Notes under the pieces: generated by a model
What the model was told of the DNA's origin: nothing
The model's input: the letters and a program-made list of their open reading frames with translations, nothing else
Databases searched by the model: none
Assembly (NCBI GenBank): GCA_965285935.1
Contig: OZ260662.1
Location: 78,616,001 to 78,680,000 of the forward strand
Source of the DNA: Ophelia neglecta
Lineage: Eukaryota
Direction: 5' to 3'
DNA: 64,000 nucleotides
Program-made: the position numbers and the translations under genes
Shown here: piece by piece, positions 48,476 to 51,819 of the stretch
How positions within the stretch are numbered: position 1 is the first letter of the stretch
Layout of the letters: every line of letters begins with the position of its first letter

Positions 48476-51392
48476 ATGACAACACCGCCTCAGTTACTTA
48501 GTTTAGAGGAAATTGTTCTCAAACTGTACGATGTTGAAGGGCTTAAATTTGGTAGCTTTACCATGCGGACAGGCGAGAAGACTCCGGTTTATATCGACAT
48601 GAGGGTAATGTGGAGTTACCCTGACTTGGTGGTAAGGTTTTAAGCCTCTCACGTAACGTACAAAACAGTAGACCAGCGTGTATAAGAACCCTTATCAAAT
48701 GTGAATTATTGTCTGTGCTATATTACTTCATACCGATCAATAATTATTATTTCGTGCGCATCGATTCTCTATCTAGGTATACATATAGGGCTAAGTCGTA
48801 AAAATACGGTTCTGTCCTACAGCATTTGTACAGATGTTAAGACCGTCCCAATTTGTTTTGAAAAGATTTCTTATACAAAGGAATCAGGTTATTACACATG
48901 GGTTGGAATCGGTTGGGTAATTTTAATAATGCTGTATAGTTTACACATTCTTGTGTGTGTTTGGGGGGGGGGGGGTTGTACTTAAGCAACTGTAAAAGAG
49001 AGGTTGCTGCCACATCGCCCCCCTTAATTCCCGGCTCTCCCTAATATATAGTTAGAGAGGCACATGTTGGCAATTCTTTGGTATATGTATCTCGTAACGT
49101 ACTTTTCAGGTGCCGACATTTTTTGGTCATTTTTTTTATAATAGTCTATGTATAAGGCTGTTGATAAAGACGAAATTCCAAGATCTGCATCGGTACCAGA
49201 AGTATGTCTGATGGCTTCGTTATACCGCTTCCGAATTATAGTTTCACTATTATGCACATGTTTTGCCAGGAGCCTATGATGTTATGGCGGTCTATTAGAA
49301 AGACACATTTAAGATTAAGTTAATCAGATAGGCATATAATAATAGGTATAAAAAATAATAAGCTTTTTTTAAAGAATGTTGGCTAATAATTCTTTCATGT
49401 CATAACCGTTCCATTCAAATTATTTCTTTAACATCACATAATAAAAGGACTTTCAAATATACATTATGTGTTGCCATCACCATACAGTGAAACCTGGAAA
49501 TTAGGGACAGGCAAGGGACTGTGTTAAAGTGCCCTGTTTTCTAAGGTGCCCCTAATTTCAAGGTTATTTAATATATAAAACGCTATGTTGGGTCCTAATG
49601 TAGCTGTCCCTAATTATCAGGTGCCCCTAATTTCAAGGTGCCCTTTAGACCAGGTTTCACTGTATATACTTGCAGCGGTCGGTCTCTGAACATTTGTGGC
49701 AAGAGGTACAAAAACACCAGGGGGAATACGACTGTGTGTGTGGACTGCCATACCAAGGCATACCACTGGCGACAGTAAGTTATACATATACACAATTCAC
49801 ACTTAATAAATTATCTGTCTGGCTAAAATACACAATTTTAAGTCTAGTATATTCTTCTCTTTACATAACACGTTAAATATATAAACCTAGTTTTTCACAC
49901 GAACAGGTTATTCATGTGTGAATTATAAATCTATTCAGATCTGAAGCTTCAATTTTCCGTATGATACACAGACAGCGTGTTAATTTCACATTACACTAGG
50001 CCTAGCTTCGTTTTTAATTATGATTTATTTGATTGTGTGCAGCACTTGTGCACACAGTATGGTGTCCCGATGATTATGAAGCGGCAGCAACCAAAGCAGT
50101 ATGGCACGAAGAAGCTGTTGGAAGGGCATTTTAAAATGGGGGATAGATGTCTTATATTGGATGATGTAGTCATGACTGGAGGAACCCTAGTCAAAGACAT
50201 ACCGGTGCGTTCAGTGTTATATACGAATCTTAGGAACCGCTTCATAAAAACAATTGCCCCCCCCCTGCAATTTTTAAGCTTACTAAGACGAATTATTTAT
50301 AAAATGCCGAGGAAGGCCTTCACCACCTAATCAGATATTAATATTTAATCAAGCCTACACGTATAGCAGATCTATAGGAAGTTTATTTTAGGAGGGAGAA
50401 GACTTGATTCGAAGTTCATTTTTCCTCAGGTTTTTCAGAATGCGGGGCTGGCTGTCCCTTGTTGTGTTGCCTTTATTGACAGAGATCAAGGAGGCTGCCA
50501 AAGGACACAGAAAACCTGTGGGGTGGACGTGCACTGGTAGATATATTGTCATTCACTCAAGTGGTTCTAGTAAGGAATCATGTATCGTACATATATATCA
50601 CTCGAGAAAAAGATAATTTTTTTTCATATAGGGCCTATCCACAGGGCCTTTTAAAACTGAAAATCAGAGTTGACTGTCCCATATAAACCTCCTTTATACT
50701 ATATAAAAAATATAGTATATAGTGACTCTATATGGGAGATTTCAGTTTTAAAAGGCCCTGTGGTCGCACAAATGATGCCCAGAAATGCGATATATGTCCA
50801 GGTGATCATGACCAGCTGTGGAACTGGTAGGGCACAGAAATATCAAAGTATGTAGGTAACTCAGGGCGTACTTCTTCACCCACCACGTTACCTGATTATG
50901 TGTTCCGCTGCAGGATTACGCAATTAACTACTTTGATATTTTCTGTAACCAACGTTCAGCGCCTTAAATGCTTTAATTTTTTTACTCCTGAACTCAGATG
51001 ATATTTCTGAGCATCATTTGTACAACGGTTATTTAATATGCACAAAGGTAAGGCACGGTACCTACAGCCGATGAAGCACTGTGTCAGTGCCATTATTAGT
51101 TGCCCGAGGTTAGTGTGAAAGTTATTACGTACGGCTATAAAAGTTTCTTCTTTTTGGAGTTAGAACTTTCAACTTATTATATTACAACGCCAAACCAATT
51201 GTTGTACGTCACCTCCAATTCTACGTTATTTTCAGCGTTCTTACCATTGAGGAGATATTTGAATATCTACTCAAAGCAGGGAGGTTAAACCAGGCAACAG
51301 TAGATGATACCCGGGCTTATCTGCAAGCAAATCGTTTTGATAACATTACTACAGAAATATGCGAGAAGACAGAAGACGACCAACAATTATAA
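48476..51392 (+). CDS. Stand-alone orotate phosphoribosyltransferase-like protein (UMPS N-terminal domain only), 226 aa
   Basis: Exons 48476-48631 (MTTPPQLLSLEEIVLKLYDVEGLKFGSFTMRTGEKTPVYIDMRVMWSYPDLV), 49676-49774 (..YDCVCGLPYQGIPLAT), 50043-50204 (..PMIMKRQQPKQYGTKKLLEG..RCLILDDVVMTGGT..), 50430-50536 (..FIDRDQGG..), 51236-51392 (..VLTIEEIFEYL...ANRFDNITTEICEKTEDDQQL*). All GT-AG, in phase, no internal stops; AATAAA at 51468. Confidence 0.9.
49485..49662. mobile_element. Tc1/mariner-pogo-type MITE, 178 bp, in OPRT intron 1
   Basis: TIR CAGTGAAACCTGG, TA on both flanks, internal repeats GGTGCCCCTAATTTCAAGG. Confidence 0.85.
50639..50763. mobile_element. 125-bp hairpin MITE in OPRT intron 4
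   Basis: 24-bp perfect inverted ends CCACAGGGCCTTTTAAAACTGAAA; no TSD visible. Confidence 0.7.
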
Positions 51393-51536
51393 CGTCATCA
51401 CATTAGGAATACATCGGGGATTCGATGGCCACGGATACTTCTAGATAATTATAGGCATACTAGGGGTAATAAAAAAATAATACCATGCATGACAAGACTT
51501 TTTTGTGATTCGGTGTTGCTCTAAGCAGCATCTTAA

Positions 51537-51819
51537 GGGACGGACCATTAGATATCTAGGGGGGGGGCCAGAGAACTTGGCTCTAGTTAGGAAATTTTTT
51601 TTCTTGAATAAAGTTGACAGAAAATTTTTTTTCACCACAGAATCCGCCAGATTATTTTTTTCCTCTATATAATATATTTTTTTACTTAAAAATAATAGGC
51701 AGATTATTTTTTTTTTATGTATTTTTCTGGCAGATTATTTATTTTTGAGAAAATCAAAGCCAGAAAATTTATTTTCATTTTTTTCTGGCCCCCCCCCTAG
51801 ATATCTAATGGTCCGTCCC
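51537..51819. mobile_element. PIF/Harbinger-like MITE, 283 bp, just downstream of the OPRT poly(A) signal
   Basis: ~35-bp TIR GGGACGGACCATTAGATATCTAGGGGGGGGGCCAG; TAA TSD at 51534-51536 and 51820-51822. Confidence 0.9.

Follow-up and report, generated by a model that had tools for sequence, protein, structure and literature searches.

The window analysed here is a stretch of 64,000 nucleotides of the Ophelia neglecta genome (C2:78616001-78680000; positions below 64,000 are counted from its first letter). It carries a gene for the orotate phosphoribosyltransferase (OPRT) domain of the enzyme UMPS that lacks the orotidine 5'-monophosphate (OMP) decarboxylase (ODC) half. Animals are the textbook case of OPRT and ODC fused in one UMPS. 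The window gene is a genuine, intact and selectively maintained monofunctional member of the OPRT family, and on balance we favour the view that it is an orotate-using second entry into uridine 5'-monophosphate (UMP) synthesis. Sequence comparisons place it in a distinct, phylum-wide OPRT subfamily, here called OPRT2, which is secondarily unfused and bears its own signature beside the active site.

Structure of the window gene

The gene consists of five exons on the + strand (48476-51392) and all of its introns, as read from the sequence, are of the GT-AG type, with phases 0, 0, 0 and 2. The joined coding sequence of 681 nt specifies a protein of 226 amino acids (aa) with a single terminal stop. 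An earlier note on this DNA had described an intact, spliced OPRT gene of 226 aa, and the five GT-AG exons, the TAA stop codon and the AATAAA signal were all recovered when the sequence was read again. The features of the gene are the following, a slash marking the exon borders.

48476-48631, + strand: exon 1, 156 nt, 52 codons from the ATG (ATG ... TTGGTG/gtaagg); it contains the hood FGSFTMRTGEKTPVYIDMR, with Arg31 at the position of the canonical OPRT Lys and Tyr39-Ile40 as the base-stacking pair
49676-49774, + strand: exon 2, 99 nt, 33 codons (ttgcag/CGG ... CGACA/gtaagt); its C-terminal end is GLPYQGIPLAT, with the clade-specific PYQGIP where UMPS has PYTALP
50043-50204, + strand: exon 3, 162 nt, 54 codons (gtgcag/CAC ... 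ATACCG/gtgcgt); it contains the catalytic flexible loop KRQQPKQYGTKK (Arg99, Gln100, Lys103) and, at residues 122-133, the phosphoribosyl pyrophosphate (PRPP) motif LILDDVVMTGGT (Asp125-Asp126, Met129-Thr133)
50430-50536, + strand: exon 4, 107 nt, 35 codons plus 2 nt, phase 2 (cctcag/GTT ... CACTG/gtagat); it contains FIDRDQGG, whose Arg157 is the counterpart of the base-binding Arg of OPRT
51236-51392, + strand: exon 5, 157 nt (tttcag/C GTT ... TTA TAA), stop codon at 51390-51392; it encodes the C-terminal helix, the conserved NRFD and a 16-aa acidic tail before the TAA
51468-51473, + strand: polyadenylation signal AATAAA, 76 nt 3' of the stop codon

Database searches were performed with single window exons or with orthologues as queries, and the joined 226-aa model was used for local pairwise alignments, alignment tables and the tree. 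With exon 3 alone, the human OPRT domain was matched at E=1e-10 (PDB 2WNS), ahead of UMP synthases and bacterial OPRTs, and PF00156 matched the exon 3 piece alone with E=7.6e-4.

Intron 1 holds an element resembling a miniature inverted-repeat transposable element (MITE) of 174 bp (49487-49660), which is bounded by perfect 11-bp terminal inverted repeats (GTGAAACCTGG ... CCAGGTTTCAC) and ends 15 nt 5' of the exon 2 acceptor. It belongs to a very high-copy family, since word depth reached ~1.6-1.9e5 in the element versus ~12 in the flanking DNA, and its insertion is polymorphic, because the empty site was also found in contigs of all three DNA runs. Other high-copy repeats lie at 50580-50807 in intron 4 (word depth 3e3-4e4) and at 51492-51700 in the 3' flank (9e3-5e4), where the background was ~12-30.

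Relation to the complete UMPS on C9

A six-frame search of the whole 762-Mb genome with the ODC model PF00215 returned three exon matches, all located at C9 221551-231018, and no ODC exon was found elsewhere on the window chromosome at E<=10. Within the whole 64-kb window, tblastn with four ODC halves produced noise scattered over both strands (best E=0.36), and none of the ten longest open reading frames (ORFs) 3' of the window gene had a Pfam match. The pyrE model and the exon 3 query each detected exactly two loci, the window gene and C9:212665-217501, the latter placed just upstream of the C9 ODC exons. The genome's own UMPS spans C9:212626-231018, with five OPRT exons followed by the ODC exons; its OPRT part was rebuilt as follows.

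212626-212769, 216451-216549, 217319-217480, 218386-218489 and 219889-220036 of C9: OPRT exons of the canonical UMPS

Over its whole length the window protein is colinear with the OPRT half of the C9 UMPS, 217 aligned aa being 42% identical (E=2e-69). The two genes agree in aligned codon and phase at each of the four introns, exons 2 and 3 are equal in length (99 and 162 nt) and exon 4 is off by one codon. The window stop codon lies at most 3 codons from the end of exon 5 of the C9 UMPS, beyond which the C9 linker runs on. Because the four introns are shared and a full UMPS is present on C9, we interpret the window gene as a DNA-level duplicate of UMPS without the ODC half; it does not carry the C-terminal ODC domain (PF00215/TIGR01740) by which membership of UMPS is judged.

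These results rule out several other origins. Fission of the sole UMPS is discarded by the complete OPRT and ODC arrangement on C9, and both a retrogene and a bacterial transfer are discarded by the four introns that the window gene has in common with the C9 UMPS in position and phase. ODC exons further downstream or elsewhere on the chromosome are discarded by the confinement of PF00215 matches to C9 and by the lack of tblastn and Pfam matches in the window. The earlier note had seen in the gene a UMPS paralogue without decarboxylase, in agreement with the 42% identity to the C9 UMPS and with the lack of ODC sequence in the window. Concerning its origin, the note had left a choice between a retained duplicate and a fission product. 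The complete C9 UMPS speaks for the former, and the same UMPS together with a bifunctional orthologue in Lingula, described below, removes the latter. The genome-wide check for a separate full-length UMPS that the note had suggested located one, on C9, with ODC exons nowhere else.

Inside the canonical UMPS, at C9:222800-223657, an open frame continues from the ODC exon that ends near 222799 and comprises a tandem array of ~20 copies of the 16-residue unit TDITHYSPLQRTDTPL[V/F]. It looks like a 48-bp minisatellite in an intron.

Orthologues in annelids and in a brachiopod

When exon 3 was run with HMMER against 1.84 billion representative sequences, the motif DDV[VIL]MTG was present in 16 of the best 150 clusters (50% identity), most of the matches being exon-sized pieces that stop at the same intron. 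Further orthologues were collected through word-index searches seeded with the Owenia sequence and then with a five-sequence alignment. Stand-alone orthologues of 190-245 aa were found in Capitella, Owenia, Paralvinella and several further contigs.

Capitella teleta CAPTEDRAFT_174437 (P0155), 233 aa: OPRT-only orthologue
Owenia fusiformis CAH1773530 (P0007), 225 aa: OPRT-only orthologue
Paralvinella palmiformis LSH36_1549g00014 (P0327): OPRT-only orthologue, with the N-terminal MRTGE region missing
Ancora sagittata transcriptome ORF (P0156; EukProt EP00914, GHVO01025127), 228 aa: from a word-index search
Three further contigs with OPRT2 orthologues: from word-index searches
Lingula anatina 'UMPS isoform X2/X1', 395/486 aa: X1 is P0207, from the XP_013379531-type locus, and still has an ODC half

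Ancora sagittata is a gregarine parasite of Capitella. With 86% identity to the Capitella protein, its ORF almost certainly represents host RNA contaminating the parasite transcriptome.

The window protein showed 52-56% identity to the Capitella protein and to the orthologues P0153 and P0154, 44% to that of Owenia and 33-40% to all others. For the three named annelid orthologues the range is 44-55%; the alignments with P0155 and P0007 extended over ~215 aa, and that with P0327 gave 52% over 158 aa. Spliced mapping resolved exons of 144/99/162/107 nt plus a last exon in Owenia and of 156/99/162/107/178 nt in Capitella, compared with 156/99/162/107/157 nt in the window gene. At both the Capitella and the Owenia loci the next gene is convergent and unrelated. 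Two contigs, L015 (1189 nt, JGI) and L016 (1047 nt, Logan), contain the whole ORF without introns, a stop codon and a 3' untranslated region with AATAAA near its end, and we therefore regard them as mature monofunctional mRNAs. The orthologues end 7-23 aa past NRFD, and the window protein does likewise. The clade signature (MRTGE, DMRV, PYQGIP, DDV[VIL]MTG, F[FI]DR and NRFD) is complete in the window protein and is also present in P0326 and, save for the missing MRTGE region, in P0327. A canonical UMPS accompanies the paralogue in Capitella (P0221, 470 aa) and in Lingula, where it lies on a different contig (P0219). In our searches of the literature we came across no paper on OPRT-only genes of annelids or lophotrochozoans, nor on the annelid and brachiopod OPRT2 lineage. 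The gene is stand-alone, as the earlier note had proposed, but less singular than was implied, being part of an annelid-wide family already represented in public protein sets.

The same data bear on whether exon 5 might be an alternative last exon, with other transcripts joining exons 1-4 to distant coding exons. Such transcripts could have been missed, given that the 3' flank inspected covers 12.6 kb and that the runs holding the locus are all DNA. However, no ODC exon was detected on the chromosome at the threshold given above, nothing coding was recognisable downstream by tblastn with ODC halves or by Pfam on the ORFs, and both the orthologous cDNAs and the gene neighbourhoods indicate a monofunctional product, so that we give this possibility almost no credence. 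A transcript leading from exon 5 into ODC exons, a case that the earlier note had named as damaging to a stand-alone gene, is very unlikely, since ODC exons are found only on another chromosome, orthologous cDNAs end after the same tail and, in Capitella and Owenia, the following gene is the convergent, unrelated one.

Phylogeny and dating of the duplication

A maximum-likelihood tree was built from 38 OPRT regions under LG+C20+F+G4 PMSF. Lingula X1 and all the stand-alone forms made up a clade of 7 rows with 100/100 support, on a stem of 1.26 substitutions per site, and the stand-alone subset, with the window protein inside it, was supported with 100/96. The C9 UMPS grouped with the Capitella UMPS (92/84), among ordinary animal UMPS. 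In the free tree the OPRT2 clade was placed outside all eukaryotic UMPS halves; constraining it with spiralian UMPS cost 17.7 lnL, and the constraint was not rejected by the approximately unbiased (AU) test (p=0.078). Because of the shared introns, we read this deep placement as probable long-branch behaviour. The duplication of UMPS appears to be older than the annelid-brachiopod split, and we give no finer date. Owenia is usually placed as sister to the remaining annelids, and the loss of the ODC half would therefore be at least as old as the annelid ancestor.

In the Lingula protein P0207, 14 of 74 near-invariant positions of the ODC half are changed, with the D-K-D core kept. The changes include R451S and T321I, at the positions of the phosphate-gripper arginine and a ribose-binding threonine. 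This half scored 140 bits with TIGR01740 (cut-off 92.3), compared with 203 for the Capitella UMPS, and may be a decaying or repurposed decarboxylase.

OPRT-only proteins annotated as 'UMPS-like' were also found in the spider Parasteatoda tepidariorum (P0031, 212 aa) and in the wasp Leptopilina boulardi (P0328, 203 aa). Neither has the annelid signature, and on the tree the spider protein lies away from the annelid clade, which suggests that independent truncated duplicates of UMPS recur in animals. The 807-aa protein KRX76493 of Trichinella sp. T6 (P0003) has two UMPS-like units in tandem (OPRT-ODC-OPRT-ODC) and could be either a genuine tandem fusion or a merged gene model.

Selective constraint on the window gene

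The ORF is intact in every member of the clade, and 76 columns are invariant among five orthologues. Between orthologues dN ranged from 0.32 to 0.52, and no dN/dS ratio is given because dS was saturated in all ten orthologue pairs. The DNA runs of the sample contained 8 exonic variants, of which 5 are silent and 3 conservative (F115Y, E180D and E218D), with no frameshift or stop allele among them; finding at least 5 silent variants out of 8 has P=0.015, given that 21.6% of the possible single-base changes are silent. The three runs that hold the locus are DNA, as their contigs are colinear with the introns and contain no exon-exon joints.

These observations have to be weighed against the idea that the gene is a relic en route to loss, a silent or dispensable copy that is not yet disrupted in Ophelia neglecta. 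The presence in one allele of a high-copy MITE 15 nt 5' of the exon 2 acceptor, and the recovery of the locus from DNA runs exclusively, would fit such a fate. On the other side, the ORF, the splice sites and the polyadenylation signal are intact or canonical, the gene has been conserved at least since the split between Owenia and the other annelids, with identical exon sizes, and synonymous polymorphism is in excess. We consider a relic highly improbable.

Active-site residues and proposed function

As a reference we used a set of 109 canonical UMPS, whose OPRT half has 58 columns with an invariance of at least 95%. The window protein retains Tyr39-Ile40 (within PVYIDMR), Arg99, Lys103, Asp125-Asp126, Thr130-Gly-Gly-Thr133 and Arg157. 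Its PRPP motif consists, as in the family, of a hydrophobic strand, two acidic residues and an x-T-G-x-T/S loop, and the catalytic loop (K98-R99-Q100-Q101-P102-K103-Q104-Y105-G106) contains both the Arg and the Lys. The corresponding residues of the S. typhimurium OPRT are R99, K100 and K103 in the loop and Lys26 in the hood. In the human OPRT, the Tyr and Ile of the hood stack on and bind orotate (PMC4427171), and the catalytic loop of OPRT works in the neighbouring subunit (PMC5430920). With the curated pyrE model TIGR00336, whose cut-off is 106.8 bits, scores above this value were obtained for P0155 (111.8), P0153 (107.3), P0154 (130.5), P0007 (124.4) and P0207 (118.5); the exon-wise matches of this model in the genome scored 37.6 and 18.9 bits.

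Based on these residues, the window protein is most likely an active phosphoribosyltransferase and its substrate is probably still orotate. Orotate is the most probable base because the base-contacting residues are unchanged and because in Lingula an ODC half accompanies the signature. The Lingula orthologue has MRTGE, DDVVMTGG and FFDR while fused to ODC, so these elements of the signature would be compatible with the making of OMP.

We propose the following model. A bifunctional UMPS was duplicated at the DNA level before annelids and brachiopods separated, and the duplicate, OPRT2, evolved fast and fixed a signature of its own. OPRT2 then lost the ODC half in the annelid line and retained it in Lingula, the canonical UMPS staying on another chromosome. 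The protein is predicted to form homodimers, each subunit lending its flexible loop (Arg99 and Lys103) to the active site of the other. Asp125-Asp126 would bind Mg-PRPP and the Met129-Thr-Gly-Gly-Thr133 loop would grip the 5-phosphate, and the base would stack under Tyr39 and be recognised by Arg157. OPRT2 would convert orotate to OMP, which would be decarboxylated by the ODC half of the C9 UMPS, and would in this way provide a second, separately regulated orotate entry into UMP synthesis.

Several observations weigh against this proposal. The window protein differs from UMPS at 19 of the 58 near-invariant positions and most of the changes are common to the clade; in bovine/human numbering they include L28M, K29R, L40M, T77Q, A78G, L79I, E123D, S131T, L139F and L152F. 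The replaced states are fixed within the clade. The hood Lys of LKSG, present in at least 95% of canonical UMPS, is Arg31 (MRTG) in every clade member, a conservative change. The loop Lys100 is Gln in the window protein and in Owenia, the threonine of PYT is Gln79 in the window protein, and the first Thr of the phosphate loop is Met129. The PYT threonine position is occupied by a Lys facing pyrophosphate in bacterial and Plasmodium enzymes (PMC4427171), and the first residue of the phosphate loop binds the 5-phosphate through its backbone amide (PMC5430920). In addition, the orthologues barely exceed the TIGR00336 cut-off when compared with the Capitella UMPS (141.9 bits), an extra OPRT without an ODC of its own offers no obvious advantage, and expression of the window gene is read from its orthologues only. 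RNA interference of R12E2.11, an OPRT-domain-only gene of C. elegans, did not phenocopy umps-1 (PMC12811246). Finally, the changes in the Lingula ODC half hint at a paralogue that was already drifting away from UMP synthesis.

In a rival reading, a phosphoribosyltransferase of the same origin would have been neofunctionalised. Its base would now be a pyridine carboxylate (quinolinate or nicotinate, for example) or else a pyrimidine for salvage, uracil or another, and the ODC half would have become useless and been lost. We regard this as possible, though rather doubtful. A third of the near-invariant OPRT positions were replaced and then fixed in the clade, the stem branch is very long at 1.26 substitutions per site, the change from PYTALP to PYQGIP is restricted to the members without ODC, and the Lingula orthologue has a degenerating ODC half. 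In contrast, the base-stacking Tyr-Ile pair and the base-reading arginine of the DR motif are unchanged, and the orthologues still exceed the pyrE equivalog cut-off. As for quinolinate, no match to PF01729 or TIGR00078, models for quinolinate phosphoribosyltransferase (QPRT), was obtained in this genome, in an exon-wise search of unproven sensitivity, and the sole PF02749 match corresponds to the NAPRT gene on C12 (C12:19930000-19939999). Yet exons of HAAO are present at C1:39901809-39902957, a hint that the kynurenine pathway of Ophelia neglecta may lack QPRT, and substitution of UMPS for QPRT has been proposed in C. elegans (PMC11965519). However, the absence of QPRT is deduced from exon-wise HMM matches only and the C. 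elegans precedent is contested in the same paper (PMC11965519). Moreover, Alvinella, a relative of the OPRT2-bearing Paralvinella, is reported to have a QPRT (PMC12403961), so the presence of OPRT2 does not track the absence of QPRT. A role as a quinolinate substitute is a long shot and a low-probability variant of this reading. We are similarly reserved about the wider suggestion that OPRT2 either changed its base substrate or became a regulator of UMPS, and that the ODC half in consequence decayed, as in Lingula, and was then lost, as in annelids.

A purely regulatory role would imply a catalytically weak or inactive subunit that forms heterodimers with the OPRT half of UMPS and tunes the activity or stability of the latter. 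The earlier note had suggested such heterodimers, beside the ribosylation of a different base, and both ideas are speculative. Both subunits of an OPRT dimer contribute to each active site, the loop acting in the neighbour (PMC5430920), and Lys100 is replaced by Gln in the window protein and in Owenia, as such a role might allow. Nevertheless, the main residues for catalysis and binding are kept throughout the clade, although a mere scaffold could do without them, and preservation of a hetero-interface is not obvious when identity to UMPS is 42% and many conserved positions have changed. We judge a regulatory subunit unlikely, and continue to favour an orotate-using enzyme.

Significance and comparison with known systems

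OPRT2 constitutes a second, phylum-wide lineage in which the fusion of OPRT and ODC was undone after duplication. The brachiopod 'intermediate', with an ODC half that may be decaying, offers a clean natural experiment on the reasons for the fusion and on the possible uses of an OPRT by itself, and the fixed changes beside the active site pose a concrete and cheap biochemical question, namely which base is used. Annelid proteins so far listed as 'hypothetical' or 'unnamed' can also be named and placed in an evolutionary context. Only the demonstration of a new substrate or of a regulatory role would alter general principles.

The closest known system is the OPRT domain of animal UMPS (human 2WNS and the C9 UMPS), with which the window protein shares the fold family, colinearity over the full length, the PRPP motif, the Arg and Lys of the loop, the Tyr-Ile pair and the arginine of the DR motif. 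It differs from animal UMPS in having neither the linker nor the ODC domain and in its motifs: LKSG is replaced by MRTG, PYTALP by PYQGIP, EDVVTSGSS by DDVVMTGGT and LLDR by FIDR (FFDR in most members of the clade). The annelid OPRT-only proteins all share the signature and the short tail after NRFD, and the Capitella and Owenia loci share the five-exon structure; their database entries are automatic annotations ('hypothetical protein', 'unnamed protein product' or 'orotate phosphoribosyltransferase'). The OPRT half of Lingula P0207 is sister to the stand-alone clade and has MRTGE, DDVVMTGG, FFDR and NRFD, but this protein differs in that the ODC half is present and the ancestral PYTALP is kept. 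C. elegans R12E2.11, the nearest analogue described so far, is likewise an OPRT-domain-only animal gene that exists next to a full umps-1, a likeness drawn from its description and not from its sequence. Lastly, bacterial and fungal PyrE and URA5-URA10 have the same stand-alone architecture of ~200-230 aa and belong to the same chemistry family, but the introns shared with UMPS indicate that the window gene, unlike them, is secondarily derived from a fused animal UMPS and does not descend from an ancestral free-standing pyrE.

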